Below, one piece after another: positions 61,541 to 64,000 of a DNA stretch of 64,000 bases. The notes under the pieces were generated by a model. That model saw only the letters and a list, made by a program, of their open reading frames with translations. It did no database searches and had not been told where the DNA came from. Position 1 is the first letter of the stretch. Every line of letters starts with the position of its first letter. Source of the stretch: Piromyces finnis finn. Lineage: Eukaryota; Fungi; Neocallimastigomycota. The translations under genes were made by a program, and so were the position numbers. The DNA is taken from contig MCFH01000005.1 of the NCBI GenBank assembly GCA_002104945.1, forward strand, positions 434,001 through 498,000. Reading direction: 5' to 3'.

Positions 61541-64000
61541 ATGAAATTCTCAACTATAATTACTGCCATTGCAGCCCTGGTGGCTCCAATGACTGCTGTT
61601 GCTAAATCTCAAGATTATGCTAGACATCTTGAATTATCACTTCTTTTCTATGAAGCTCAACGTTCTGGTAAACTTCCAGAAAATAACAGAATTTACTGGA
61701 GACATGATAGTTTAGTCGATGCTGGTGCTGATAATGGTAATATCAATGAATATTGTATAATAATTATTCAATAGCAATTTTGTTTTTCTTTTTATATTTA
61801 TATATTTTATATTTTATATTTTTATATTTAATATTTTTATATTATCAATATATTAAATAAAATGGCAAAATAGGAGTTGATCTTAGCGGTGGTTGTAAGT
61901 ATCAAAATGTATTACAAAGTGTATTACTATTAAGACCTTTTTTTTTAAACATTATTAGTAATATTTTAAATTTTTATAAATGCATATCTAAAATACAAAT
62001 AATAGATTATGATGCTGGTGATAATGCTAAATTTAATTTCCCAGGTGCTGCTACAATGACCCTTTTAGCTTGGAGTGGTATTGATTATGCTGAAGGTTAT
62101 AAGAGTGCTGGACAATGGGAATATATTTTAGATGCTGTTCGTTGGGGTGCTGATTATTTCATGAAATGTCACACTGGGTATATATAGTGTTATAATATTA
62201 AACATACTTTATTAAAAAATAGTACTAATAAATAAATATAATTTAGTAAAAATGAACTTTATGCTCAAGTTGGTGATGGTAATACTGACCATGGTAAGTA
62301 AATTTGCTATAATATAATTAAATATAAATATTGTAATAGATATTAACAAAGAAATTACATAAAAAAAATTAATATCTAACATTAATATTATCTTAAATAA
62401 TAACTATATGATAGCTGTAAGTATTATAAAAATAATTATATAGATTAAAAAAAATATTAAGTTTATAAAATATTAATAAAAATTATTTAATGTAAGTTTT
62501 GGTATCCACCAGAATATGTAAAATATGATTACCCATCATTTAAAGTTACTGCTGAAAAACCAGGTTCTGAAGTTGCTGGTGAAACTGCTGCATTTTTAGC
62601 TGCTGCTTCCATTCTTTTTAAGGATGAAGATTCTTCTTATTCTGCCAAATTATTAAAGCATGCTAAGGTATTATTAAATAACTTGATAATTTATATTAAG
62701 CTTAAAATTTTAAAAATTAATAATTTAATTTAATGAATATATCACTAATTTTTTTCATTTTATATTTTTATCATTTGCTAAAAAGGAAATTTATGAATTT
62801 GCTGATACTTATCGTGGAGATTATACTGGTGCTATTCCAGGAGTTGTTAGTTTCTACAGTACCTATAGTGGTTATAATGATGAATTAGCTTGGGGTGCTG
62901 CTTGGCTTCTTAGAGCTACAGGTGATGAATCTTATCTTAATAAATACAATGTTATCGCAAATAAAAAGTATGAATCTTATGATCCAAAGAAATTTTCAGG
63001 TGCTACTGGACCAATCTCTTGGGATGATAAGAGACCAGGTTGCTATATTTTAATTGCTATGGTTACTGGTGATGAAAATCGTATCAAGGAAGCTTACAAT
63101 TATTGTGATGCTGTATTAACACAACCAAAAACTCCAGGTGGTTTATGGTATGATGATGGTTTATCTATGTGGGGTTCTAATCGTTATGCATCAAATGCTG
63201 CCTCCATGTTAGCTATGTTTGCAAACTATCTTCCAAAATCTGATCCAAAACGTGCTAAGTATGTTGAATTTGTTCAACAACAAACTAATTATATTCTTGG
63301 TGACAACCCAGCTAAAATTAATTACGTTGTTGGTGCTGAAGCCAACTCACCAAAAGCTGTTCACCATCGTGGTTCTTCTGGTGTCTTCGATTCACAAGAT
63401 AAAGCTGCAAAACCAGATGAAAACATTTACACATTATGGGGTGCTTTAGCCGGTGGTCCAGATGAAACTGATTCTTACATTGATACTCGTAGTAACTTTA
63501 GAACCAATGAAGTAGCTCTTGATTACAATGCTGCTTTCCAAATGAATCTTGCTTTCCTTACACAAGAAGGATTAAGTAAACCAGATCCAGACAGTGTTAA
63601 AATTCATGAAAGATCTTGGCCAAAGAAAGCAGAAACTCCAGATATTAGACTTAAATTCAGTGATGGTGAATTATCTATTGCTACTGGCTCTGGTATGCGT
63701 TGCTCAGGTTGGTGTGTATCATTCACATCTTCATCATACAAAATTACACAAACTAGTGATGGTAATATTGTAAATTCTGGTCCAGAATATACTATTTGTA
63801 ACAAGCGTGAAAATAATGCTCTTGATGGTAAGGGTACTGCTCATATTGTTACTTTCCAAGCTTCTGGTTCTTCTCTTCCAACTGAATTTACTGTTTTATG
63901 TGATGGTTTCCACGCTCCACTTAATCATCAAAAGTACTCCTACATTCCAGAATGGGGTCGTCAATACAAGGTTGTAAATGGTGGTGGTGTTGAAAATACT
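61541..64000 (+). CDS. Second GH9 cellulase (3' end beyond the window), at least 6 introns including a 2-nt micro-exon
   Basis: Exons 61541-61736, 61874-61894, 62006-62177, 62247-62293, 62415-62416, 62497-62667 and 62786->64000 give a continuous frame collinear with the minus-strand GH9 ([35 protein letters not shown]). Confidence 0.92.

Follow-up and report, generated by a model that had tools for sequence, protein, structure and literature searches.

In recursive splicing, AG/GTAAGT ratchet points form zero-length exons in long introns of Drosophila and humans, and in the stwintrons of filamentous fungi an inner intron interrupts a splice signal of an outer intron, with no exon between the two. 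Here we describe an almost certain internal exon of two nucleotides (nt), CT, in the family-9 cellulase gene GH9-2 of Piromyces finnis, an anaerobic gut fungus of the Neocallimastigomycota. The gene lies on a 64,000-nt stretch of DNA (contig C178:434001-498000, hereafter the window) from a genome of 56.46 Mb in 232 contigs. Ultra-short exons are already known in fungi and plants. Long-read annotation of Coprinopsis cinerea contains 57 exons of 2 nt, besides 13 that measure 1 nt and 27 that measure 3 nt (PMC12230235), and the description of such exons as very rare in an earlier note on this DNA was overstated because of those 57. Exons of 1 nt have been described in CYP621A of Fusarium (PMC12940212) and in APC11 of Arabidopsis (PMC4674806), and PMC12940212 also cites cases from Arabidopsis, Drosophila and humans in which the exon measures 2-5 bp. 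The GH9-2 exon adds a real and well-conserved case to these examples. In the literature library that was searched, no paper paired Neocallimastigomycota with microexon or micro-exon.

The GH9-2 exon resembles the Coprinopsis exons in being a constitutive internal exon of 2 nt in an intron-rich fungus, the omission of which leads to premature stop codons and broken gene models. It differs from them in belonging to the Neocallimastigomycota rather than the Basidiomycota and in being one site that was traced through paralogues and three genera with its dinucleotide changing, whereas the Coprinopsis data are a genome-wide count without per-gene evolutionary history. The exons of CYP621A and APC11 likewise lie within a conserved motif between ordinary GT-AG introns and are essential for the reading frame; they had been missed by annotation, are conserved in orthologues and were confirmed by RNA reads. 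However, they are 1 nt long and belong to single-copy genes, whereas the GH9 exon is 2 nt long, belongs to a paralogous enzyme family, and varies in its bases because these encode a variable residue.

As in recursive splicing, a 3' splice site is followed almost immediately by a 5' splice site, and stepwise removal of the flanking sequence is expected. In recursive splicing, however, nothing is retained and the introns are very long, whereas at the GH9 site two bases are kept between introns of 80-220 nt that have their own complete signals. In all nine genomic loci with this arrangement two bases lie between the AG and the GT, and they are retained in transcripts. With stwintrons the site has in common two fungal introns so close together that their removal must be sequential. 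It is no stwintron, since the splice signals of both introns are complete and uninterrupted by the other intron, and the mRNA keeps the 2 nt that separate them.

GH9-2 is predicted from its sequence to be a functional cellulosomal family-9 endoglucanase gene. Pfam analysis of the protein identified PF00759 (GH9) at residues 26-456 with 455.6 bits, against a cut-off of 27.7, and PF02013 (CBM_10) in three stretches with 134.8 bits, and both the DAGD and the NEVALDYNA motifs are present in the public GH9-2 protein (P0001). When CT is included, the reading frame runs through 779 codons to a single terminal stop. The last 516 nt of coding sequence lie beyond the end of the window, and the stop follows them, 520 nt past that end. 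The earlier note had observed that exon 4 ends in phase 1 (GAC CAT G/gtaagt, 62293) and that the following coding exon opens in phase 0 (aag/TTT TGG, 62497), and had assigned the two missing bases to CT, located between tatgatag and gtaagt and downstream of a ctaac motif. These boundaries and coordinates proved correct, as did the total of 438 nt for exons 1-5 and the numbering of the residue as 146 in GH9-2 and in its paralogue GH9-1, which has one intron at this site (DHG/FW). According to this model the mature GH9-2 mRNA would read GAC CAT GCT TTT TGG (D-H-A-F-W), and codon 146 encodes the variable residue of the conserved stretch D-H-x-[FY]-W-Y-P-P-E.

CT is, with high probability, a used exon of GH9-2. 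All AG...GT pairs in the interval between exons 4 and 6 were enumerated, and CT was the only canonical GT-AG internal exon that restored the frame without a stop. It is preceded by the acceptor tatgatag and followed by a perfect GTAAGT donor, each of which belongs to a complete intron. Skipping CT leads to a stop at codon 156, and retention of the intron leads to a stop at codon 148; the claim that the exon is needed to keep the gene in frame was thus upheld. Two single-intron alternatives also keep the frame, one from the donor at 62294 to the acceptor cag at 62512, which removes xFWYPP, and one from the donor at 62269 to the acceptor at 62496, which removes VGDGNTDHx. The pattern YAGNNGTAAG (Y, pyrimidine) occurs four times on both strands of the window (128 kb), compared with 2.0 occurrences expected from shuffled sequences, and the chance of such a match is therefore approximately 0.003 (0.3%) per 203-nt interval on the right strand. 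The remaining three matches in the window are located at 994-1003, 16509-16518 and 34091-34100 (+).

The same architecture was found at the equivalent codon in other genes. Genomic loci were scanned by a regular expression consisting of the DH codon, one base, an intron, YAG, NN, GTAAG, an intron and [FY]W, and the 2-nt exon was identified in nine genomic loci representing eight genes (Table 1). Besides GH9-2 and its orthologue in Piromyces sp. E2, these include six further genes in three genera. The E2 orthologue (OUM66324.1, P0005, locus L011), which is 86% identical and comes from an independent assembly, reads GAC CAC T/gtaagt (128 nt) attatag/CT/gtaagc (101 nt) tatatag/TTT TGG. The public E2 protein has S at this residue, which corresponds to T+CT, and read-through would give TGT, that is, C. 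An 11-nt island around CT, ATAGCTGTAAG, is conserved between P. finnis and E2 amid diverged intron sequence, and both the position and the length of the exon are conserved in orthologues despite this divergence. Downstream of the micro-exon, the ratio of nonsynonymous to synonymous substitution rates (dN/dS) between GH9-2 and E2 was 0.21 across 574 codons and, for the first 400 codons, 0.12; purifying selection thus acts on the frame beyond the exon in both lineages.

Another GH9 paralogue of P. finnis (L003) reads GAT CAT A/gtaagt (174 nt) ttatag/GA/gtaagt (90 nt) ataaag/TAT TGG, and its orthologues have GT in Piromyces sp. E2 and CT in Neocallimastix and Anaeromyces. All eight relatives in the GH9-2 clade have A or S at the variable residue and never G, which is the residue of the Cel9A clade to which GH9-1 belongs.

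In Neocallimastix lanati and Anaeromyces robustus, the bases of the ultra-short exon are present in the mature mRNA of homologues with the same structure. Records of the N. lanati protein P0121 derive both from the genome and from many JGI contigs; seven spliced JGI contigs with untranslated regions (UTRs), from seven samples, encode the N. lanati protein (789-codon frame) and read GAT CAC ACT TAT TGG at the site. The transcript contig L023 was compared with the N. lanati genomic locus L021 by blastn, which gave alignment blocks of 100% or 99.96% identity (Table 1). Bases 782-783 of L023 (CT) remained unaligned, and these are the two genomic bases between ag and gtaag. Two other contigs, L026 and L028, gave a block pattern equal to that of L023. 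The A. robustus contigs L032 and L033 aligned to the genomic locus L029 in blocks of 99.4-100% identity that ended at 1274 and restarted at 1562, with CT between them. Four spliced contigs of the GH9-2 clade read GCT, GCT, TCT and TCT at the codon.

For P. finnis, when 31-letter words were sampled from 61541-64000, a share of 0.54-0.65 was present in each of four sequencing runs, which come from three studies. The share expected from the exon table is 0.68 for fully spliced mRNA and approximately 1.0 for genomic DNA, and these runs therefore very likely contain spliced GH9-2 transcript.

Table 1. Coordinates and splice-site features of GH9-2, its paralogue GH9-1, and homologous loci (positions in the window unless a locus or contig is named; a slash marks a splice junction).
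Feature	Coordinates	Strand	Description
GH9-2	61541 to past window end	+	GH9 catalytic domain and three CBM10 dockerins; 7 coding exons
GH9-2 exon 1	61541-61736	+	ATG at 61541
GH9-2 exon 2	61874-61894	+	21 nt, GA GTT GAT CTT AGC GGT GGT T
GH9-2 exon 3	62006-62177	+
GH9-2 exon 4	62247-62293	+	ends GAC CAT G, then gtaagt; leaves 1 base of codon 146 (phase 1)
GH9-2 intron A	62294-62414	+	121 nt; 5' gtaagt, 3' tatgatag; GC 0.12
Candidate branch site CTAAC, intron A	62376-62380	+	branch A 36 nt from 3' splice site; motif only, putative function
GH9-2 exon 5 (2-nt exon CT)	62415-62416	+	codon 146 positions 2-3 (G+CT = Ala)
GH9-2 intron B	62417-62496	+	80 nt; 5' gtaagt, 3' aatgtaag; GC 0.07
GH9-2 exon 6	62497-62667	+	phase 0; TTT TGG TAT CCA CCA GAA = FWYPPE
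GH9-2 last exon	62786 onward	+	576 codons; L001:1790-3517, stop 3518-3520
GH9-1 (public protein P0017)	49731-52457	-	Cel9A-type paralogue; comparator, no micro-exon
L023 / L021 alignment block	186-543 / 441-798		blastn
L023 / L021 alignment block	541-562 / 1125-1146		blastn
L023 / L021 alignment block	563-734 / 1275-1446		blastn
L023 / L021 alignment block	734-781 / 1567-1614		blastn
L023 / L021 alignment block	784-3253 / 1964-4434		blastn
Split codon, P. finnis GH9-2			G/CT, Ala
Split codon, Piromyces sp. E2 L011			T/CT, Ser
Split codon, P. finnis L003	C178:1349557-1349558 (L003:2630-2631)	-	A/GA, Arg
Split codon, Neocallimastix californiae L016 and L017			A/CT, Thr; two assemblies
Split codon, N. 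lanati L021			A/CT, Thr
Split codon, A. robustus L029			A/CT, Thr
Split codon, Piromyces sp. E2 L030			A/AA, Lys; K in annotation and transcripts
Split codon, Piromyces sp. E2 L031			A/GT, Ser

In the proposed mechanism, codon 146 would be split in three, with base 1 at the end of exon 4 and bases 2-3 forming the CT exon between two complete GT-AG introns, each of which would be recognised as its own unit, in keeping with the usual behaviour of short fungal introns. The 3' AG of intron A lies so near the U1/U6 site of intron B, the splice sites being 2 nt apart, that the two would overlap spatially, and there would hardly be room for two spliceosomes at the same time. Sequential removal of the introns is therefore most likely, and ordered or recursive splicing, as suggested in the earlier note, is a reasonable reading of the site. 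Whichever intron went first, the second reaction would have a normal substrate. After the removal of intron A, the donor of intron B would read ATGCT/GTAAGT, and after the removal of intron B, the acceptor of intron A would read gatag/CTTTTTGG.

Several other features of these introns and exons were observed. A small exon equivalent to exon 2 of GH9-2 is also present in GH9-1 and in the genes of Piromyces sp. E2, Neocallimastix and Anaeromyces; the transcript-to-genome blocks for its equivalent in the latter two genera are 22 nt long. GH9-2 (62668-62785) and the E2 orthologue (L011 ~2685-2805) have an extra intron, of 118 nt in GH9-2, after ...KHAK, and GH9-1 is without it. Intron B of the Neocallimastix gene contains a long (TAA)n run of a length that varies by assembly, and the intron accordingly measures 219, 215 and 216 nt in L016, L017 and L021, respectively. 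The proteins P0185-P0190 (677-678 amino acids) come from 4-5 kb metagenomic contigs of the closest GH9-2 relative, on which the open reading frame was called from within intron B; these contigs would be expected to include the micro-exon region of another species.

Automated annotation had been expected to miss the exon, and the public records agree with this expectation. The public P. finnis protein P0001 (779 amino acids) is identical to the CT model at 778 of 779 residues, the difference being G in place of A at residue 146. This G is readable only as GGT (62293-62295), and the annotated intron would therefore start with aagtaa instead of GT; we infer that automated annotation preserved the frame by extending the coding sequence two bases into intron A. 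One difference, S in place of T at residue 146, likewise separates the A. robustus annotation from the transcript product (903 residues) and the N. californiae annotation from N. lanati (789 residues), where S corresponds to AGT, the read-through reading, and T corresponds to A+CT. The N. 'constans' protein KAL6617839.1 (P0177) is identical to the N. lanati protein P0168 at 784 of 785 residues, with C instead of S at residue 146; C corresponds to TGT, a read-through of T/gt, and S corresponds to T+CT, so that the orthologues in this other genus fit the prediction. P0168 is on record on 37 contigs (NCBI, JGI/IMG), a count that comes from the record listing and carries no reading of the splicing state.

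In the models from N. californiae (P0028), A. robustus (P0123) and N. 'constans' (P0177), 2 nt of intron were thus read, giving S, S and C, respectively, at residue 146, and the models from N. lanati and Piromyces sp. E2 carry the residue given by the micro-exon. The Pecoramyces model P0181 omits the nine residues VGDGNTDHx, which is the in-frame shortcut found by the enumeration in GH9-2 and suggests that the micro-exon was an obstacle to annotation in a fourth genus too. In the public E2 protein (L011 ~2133-2240), an extra residue was found elsewhere (CHTGYKNE versus CHTGKNE in all others), which is probably a second small model error, with the donor placed 3 nt downstream (GGGTA/gttata, not GG/gtagtt).

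A number of points weigh against CT as an exon of GH9-2 and against its proposed mode of splicing. The public gene model P0001 has G, not A, at residue 146; a frame-keeping single intron exists (62294 to 62512), though the invariant FWYPP would be lost with it; the direct RNA evidence comes from homologues in other genera, not from P. finnis GH9-2 itself; and the order of intron removal is pure inference. Furthermore, neither protein nor pattern searches found a transcript-derived protein or contig of P. finnis. The protein cluster of P0001 has one member only, and a fragment search with P0001:100-300 returned nothing above 76% identity. The 31-nt exon 4/exon 6 junction pattern, with NN for the micro-exon, had 0 matches when scanned in metagenome contigs, and a search of metagenome contigs with exon 6 returned 14 loci, all of them spliced or intronless, with no new genomic copies.

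It could be that the interval is spliced in a different way, either with GGT kept and an intron beginning at aagtaa, or from the phase-1 donor to cag at 62512, which would delete xFWYPP and give the junction GACCATGAATATG. Both splices preserve the frame, and Pecoramyces P0181 likewise uses a frame-keeping shortcut, which leaves out VGDGNTDHx. However, an AA-AG junction lies outside the known spliceosomal classes, AA-AG introns not being, to our knowledge, such a class. The annotated read-through residue S of Neocallimastix and Anaeromyces is contradicted by T in the transcripts, with the protein otherwise identical, and among approximately 190 proteins compared, FWYPP is kept in every homologue except in gene models. 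A different splice of this kind is very improbable.

Alternatively, an error in the long-read assembly might have dropped GT from a true genome sequence GAC CAT GGT/gtaagt, as in GH9-1, in which case one 200-nt intron would be present and residue 146 would be G. GH9-2 does resemble GH9-1 minus GT at the donor, and P0001 has G, but in the independent E2 assembly the donor is likewise in phase 1 and CT again lies between ag and gtaag, seven other genes have the same structure, and the relatives in the GH9-2 clade all have A or S and not G. In the assembled P. finnis sequence, GACCATGGTAAGT, a perfect tatgatag/CT/gtaagt in the middle of the interval would moreover have to be a coincidence of approximately 0.003. 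Under either an assembly error or a non-canonical donor, the junction GACCATGGTTTTTGG, without CT, would be expected in transcripts. We consider an assembly error highly unlikely. A derivation of GH9-2 from GH9-1 by a recent 2-nt deletion at the donor was also considered and was dropped, since E2 and other genera share the structure.

It is hardly credible that GH9-2 is a frameshifted, decaying pseudogene in which CT is fortuitous: although the frame breaks at codon 148 or 156 without the micro-exon and the gene sits in a duplicated region rich in long interspersed nuclear elements (LINEs), all other exons are intact, including the last exon, dN/dS versus E2 is 0.12-0.21 downstream of the break, the structure is common to expressed genes of other genera, and the word share in the four runs is compatible with spliced RNA.

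Other copies of the gene do not have the micro-exon. The public record of GH9-1 bears the name 'cellulase Cel9A precursor [Piromyces finnis]', and its contig, 1,372,137 nt long, also carries the GH9-2 model. It reads GAT CAT GGT/gtaagt, followed by one 107-nt intron (51754-51648) and TTC TGG, and the variable residue is number 146 as in GH9-2. In its enzyme family, domain layout and intron positions GH9-1 is like P0021, the product of cel9A of Piromyces sp. E2, reportedly an intron-containing cellulosomal GH9 gene described in 2002. The Cel9A clade, as read in GH9-1 and in the genomic DNA of A. robustus P0024, has one phase-0 intron and G, whereas in the GH9-2 clade two introns flank the 2-nt exon. 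A single phase-0 intron after a whole codon is present in GH9-1, in P0024 and in the distant P. finnis paralogues L055 and L056, and the position of intron B is the phase-0 position of the single intron in GH9-1 and the distant paralogues. Three copies (L004, L005 and L054) have no intron at the site, nor does a further clade (L006-L008), which reads DHGAW.

A second tree was built from 27 rows, comprising genome-derived proteins and the products of UTR-bearing transcripts, with support values from the Shimodaira-Hasegawa-like approximate likelihood ratio test (SH-aLRT). The JGI records P0007, P0009, P0012-P0016, P0019, P0022, P0026, P0027 and P0032 were left out of this tree. Their contigs are exactly the size of the coding sequence, and they had formed near-zero tips in a ladder between clades; these records look chimeric and unfit as transcript evidence, and were therefore dropped.

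The micro-exon genes fall in two clades, that of GH9-2 (support 100) and that of L003/P0028/P0133 (support 100), and the Cel9A clade with its single intron and the intronless L004 are placed between the two. Taken by itself, the tree makes the micro-exon state ancestral, with two changes required. When the distant single-intron paralogues are added, one gain followed by losses and two independent gains tie at three events each. We tentatively favour a single ancient gain, in which intron A arose 2 nt upstream of an already existing intron B, because the site is identical to the base. We tentatively put forward, at somewhat less than an even chance, that the arrangement of two introns and a 2-nt exon, with a freely mutating dinucleotide, is ancestral to all dockerin-bearing GH9 genes of anaerobic gut fungi; the Cel9A clade would then have lost intron A, and the intronless copies would have lost both introns.

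The intron pair is inherited through gene duplication and through the split of Piromyces, Neocallimastix and Anaeromyces. The bases of the exon vary (CT, GT, GA and AA) and encode A, S, T, R and K. Since both the bases and the residue are variable, selection acts on the splice sites and the exon length and not on the exon sequence; what is inherited is a pair of splice sites.

The window is a duplicated region rich in cellulosome genes, with a strongly AT-rich base composition (GC 0.15-0.35). It contains a pair of GH6+CBM10 cellulase genes encoding 496 and 487 amino acids (7485-8975 and 29359-30822, minus strand), a pair of LINE-type reverse-transcriptase open reading frames of 1511 and 1512 amino acids (23319-27854 and 43593-48131, minus strand), and, between the two GH9 genes, a pair of open reading frames with an alpha/beta-hydrolase fold of 333 and 331 amino acids (55533-56534 and 57893-58888, minus strand).

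The micro-exon implies corrections to residue 146 of a major cellulosome enzyme in at least four public annotations; this residue would be A and not G in P. finnis, T and not S in N. californiae ORY60330.1 and A. robustus ORX83869.1, and S and not C in N. 'constans' KAL6617839.1, and the site also explains why the Pecoramyces model is truncated. At such sites gene finders silently introduce non-canonical junctions, and the resulting error is invisible unless it is looked for. The GH9 site is a well-documented case in which a 2-nt exon has persisted through gene duplication and the divergence of genera although its bases changed, and it provides a convenient natural substrate for studying the order of removal of introns that are 2 nt apart. 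If the ancestral origin of the arrangement is true, the Neocallimastigomycota might be unusually rich in ultra-short exons and may serve as a natural system for the study of how an intron-defining spliceosome deals with abutting introns.

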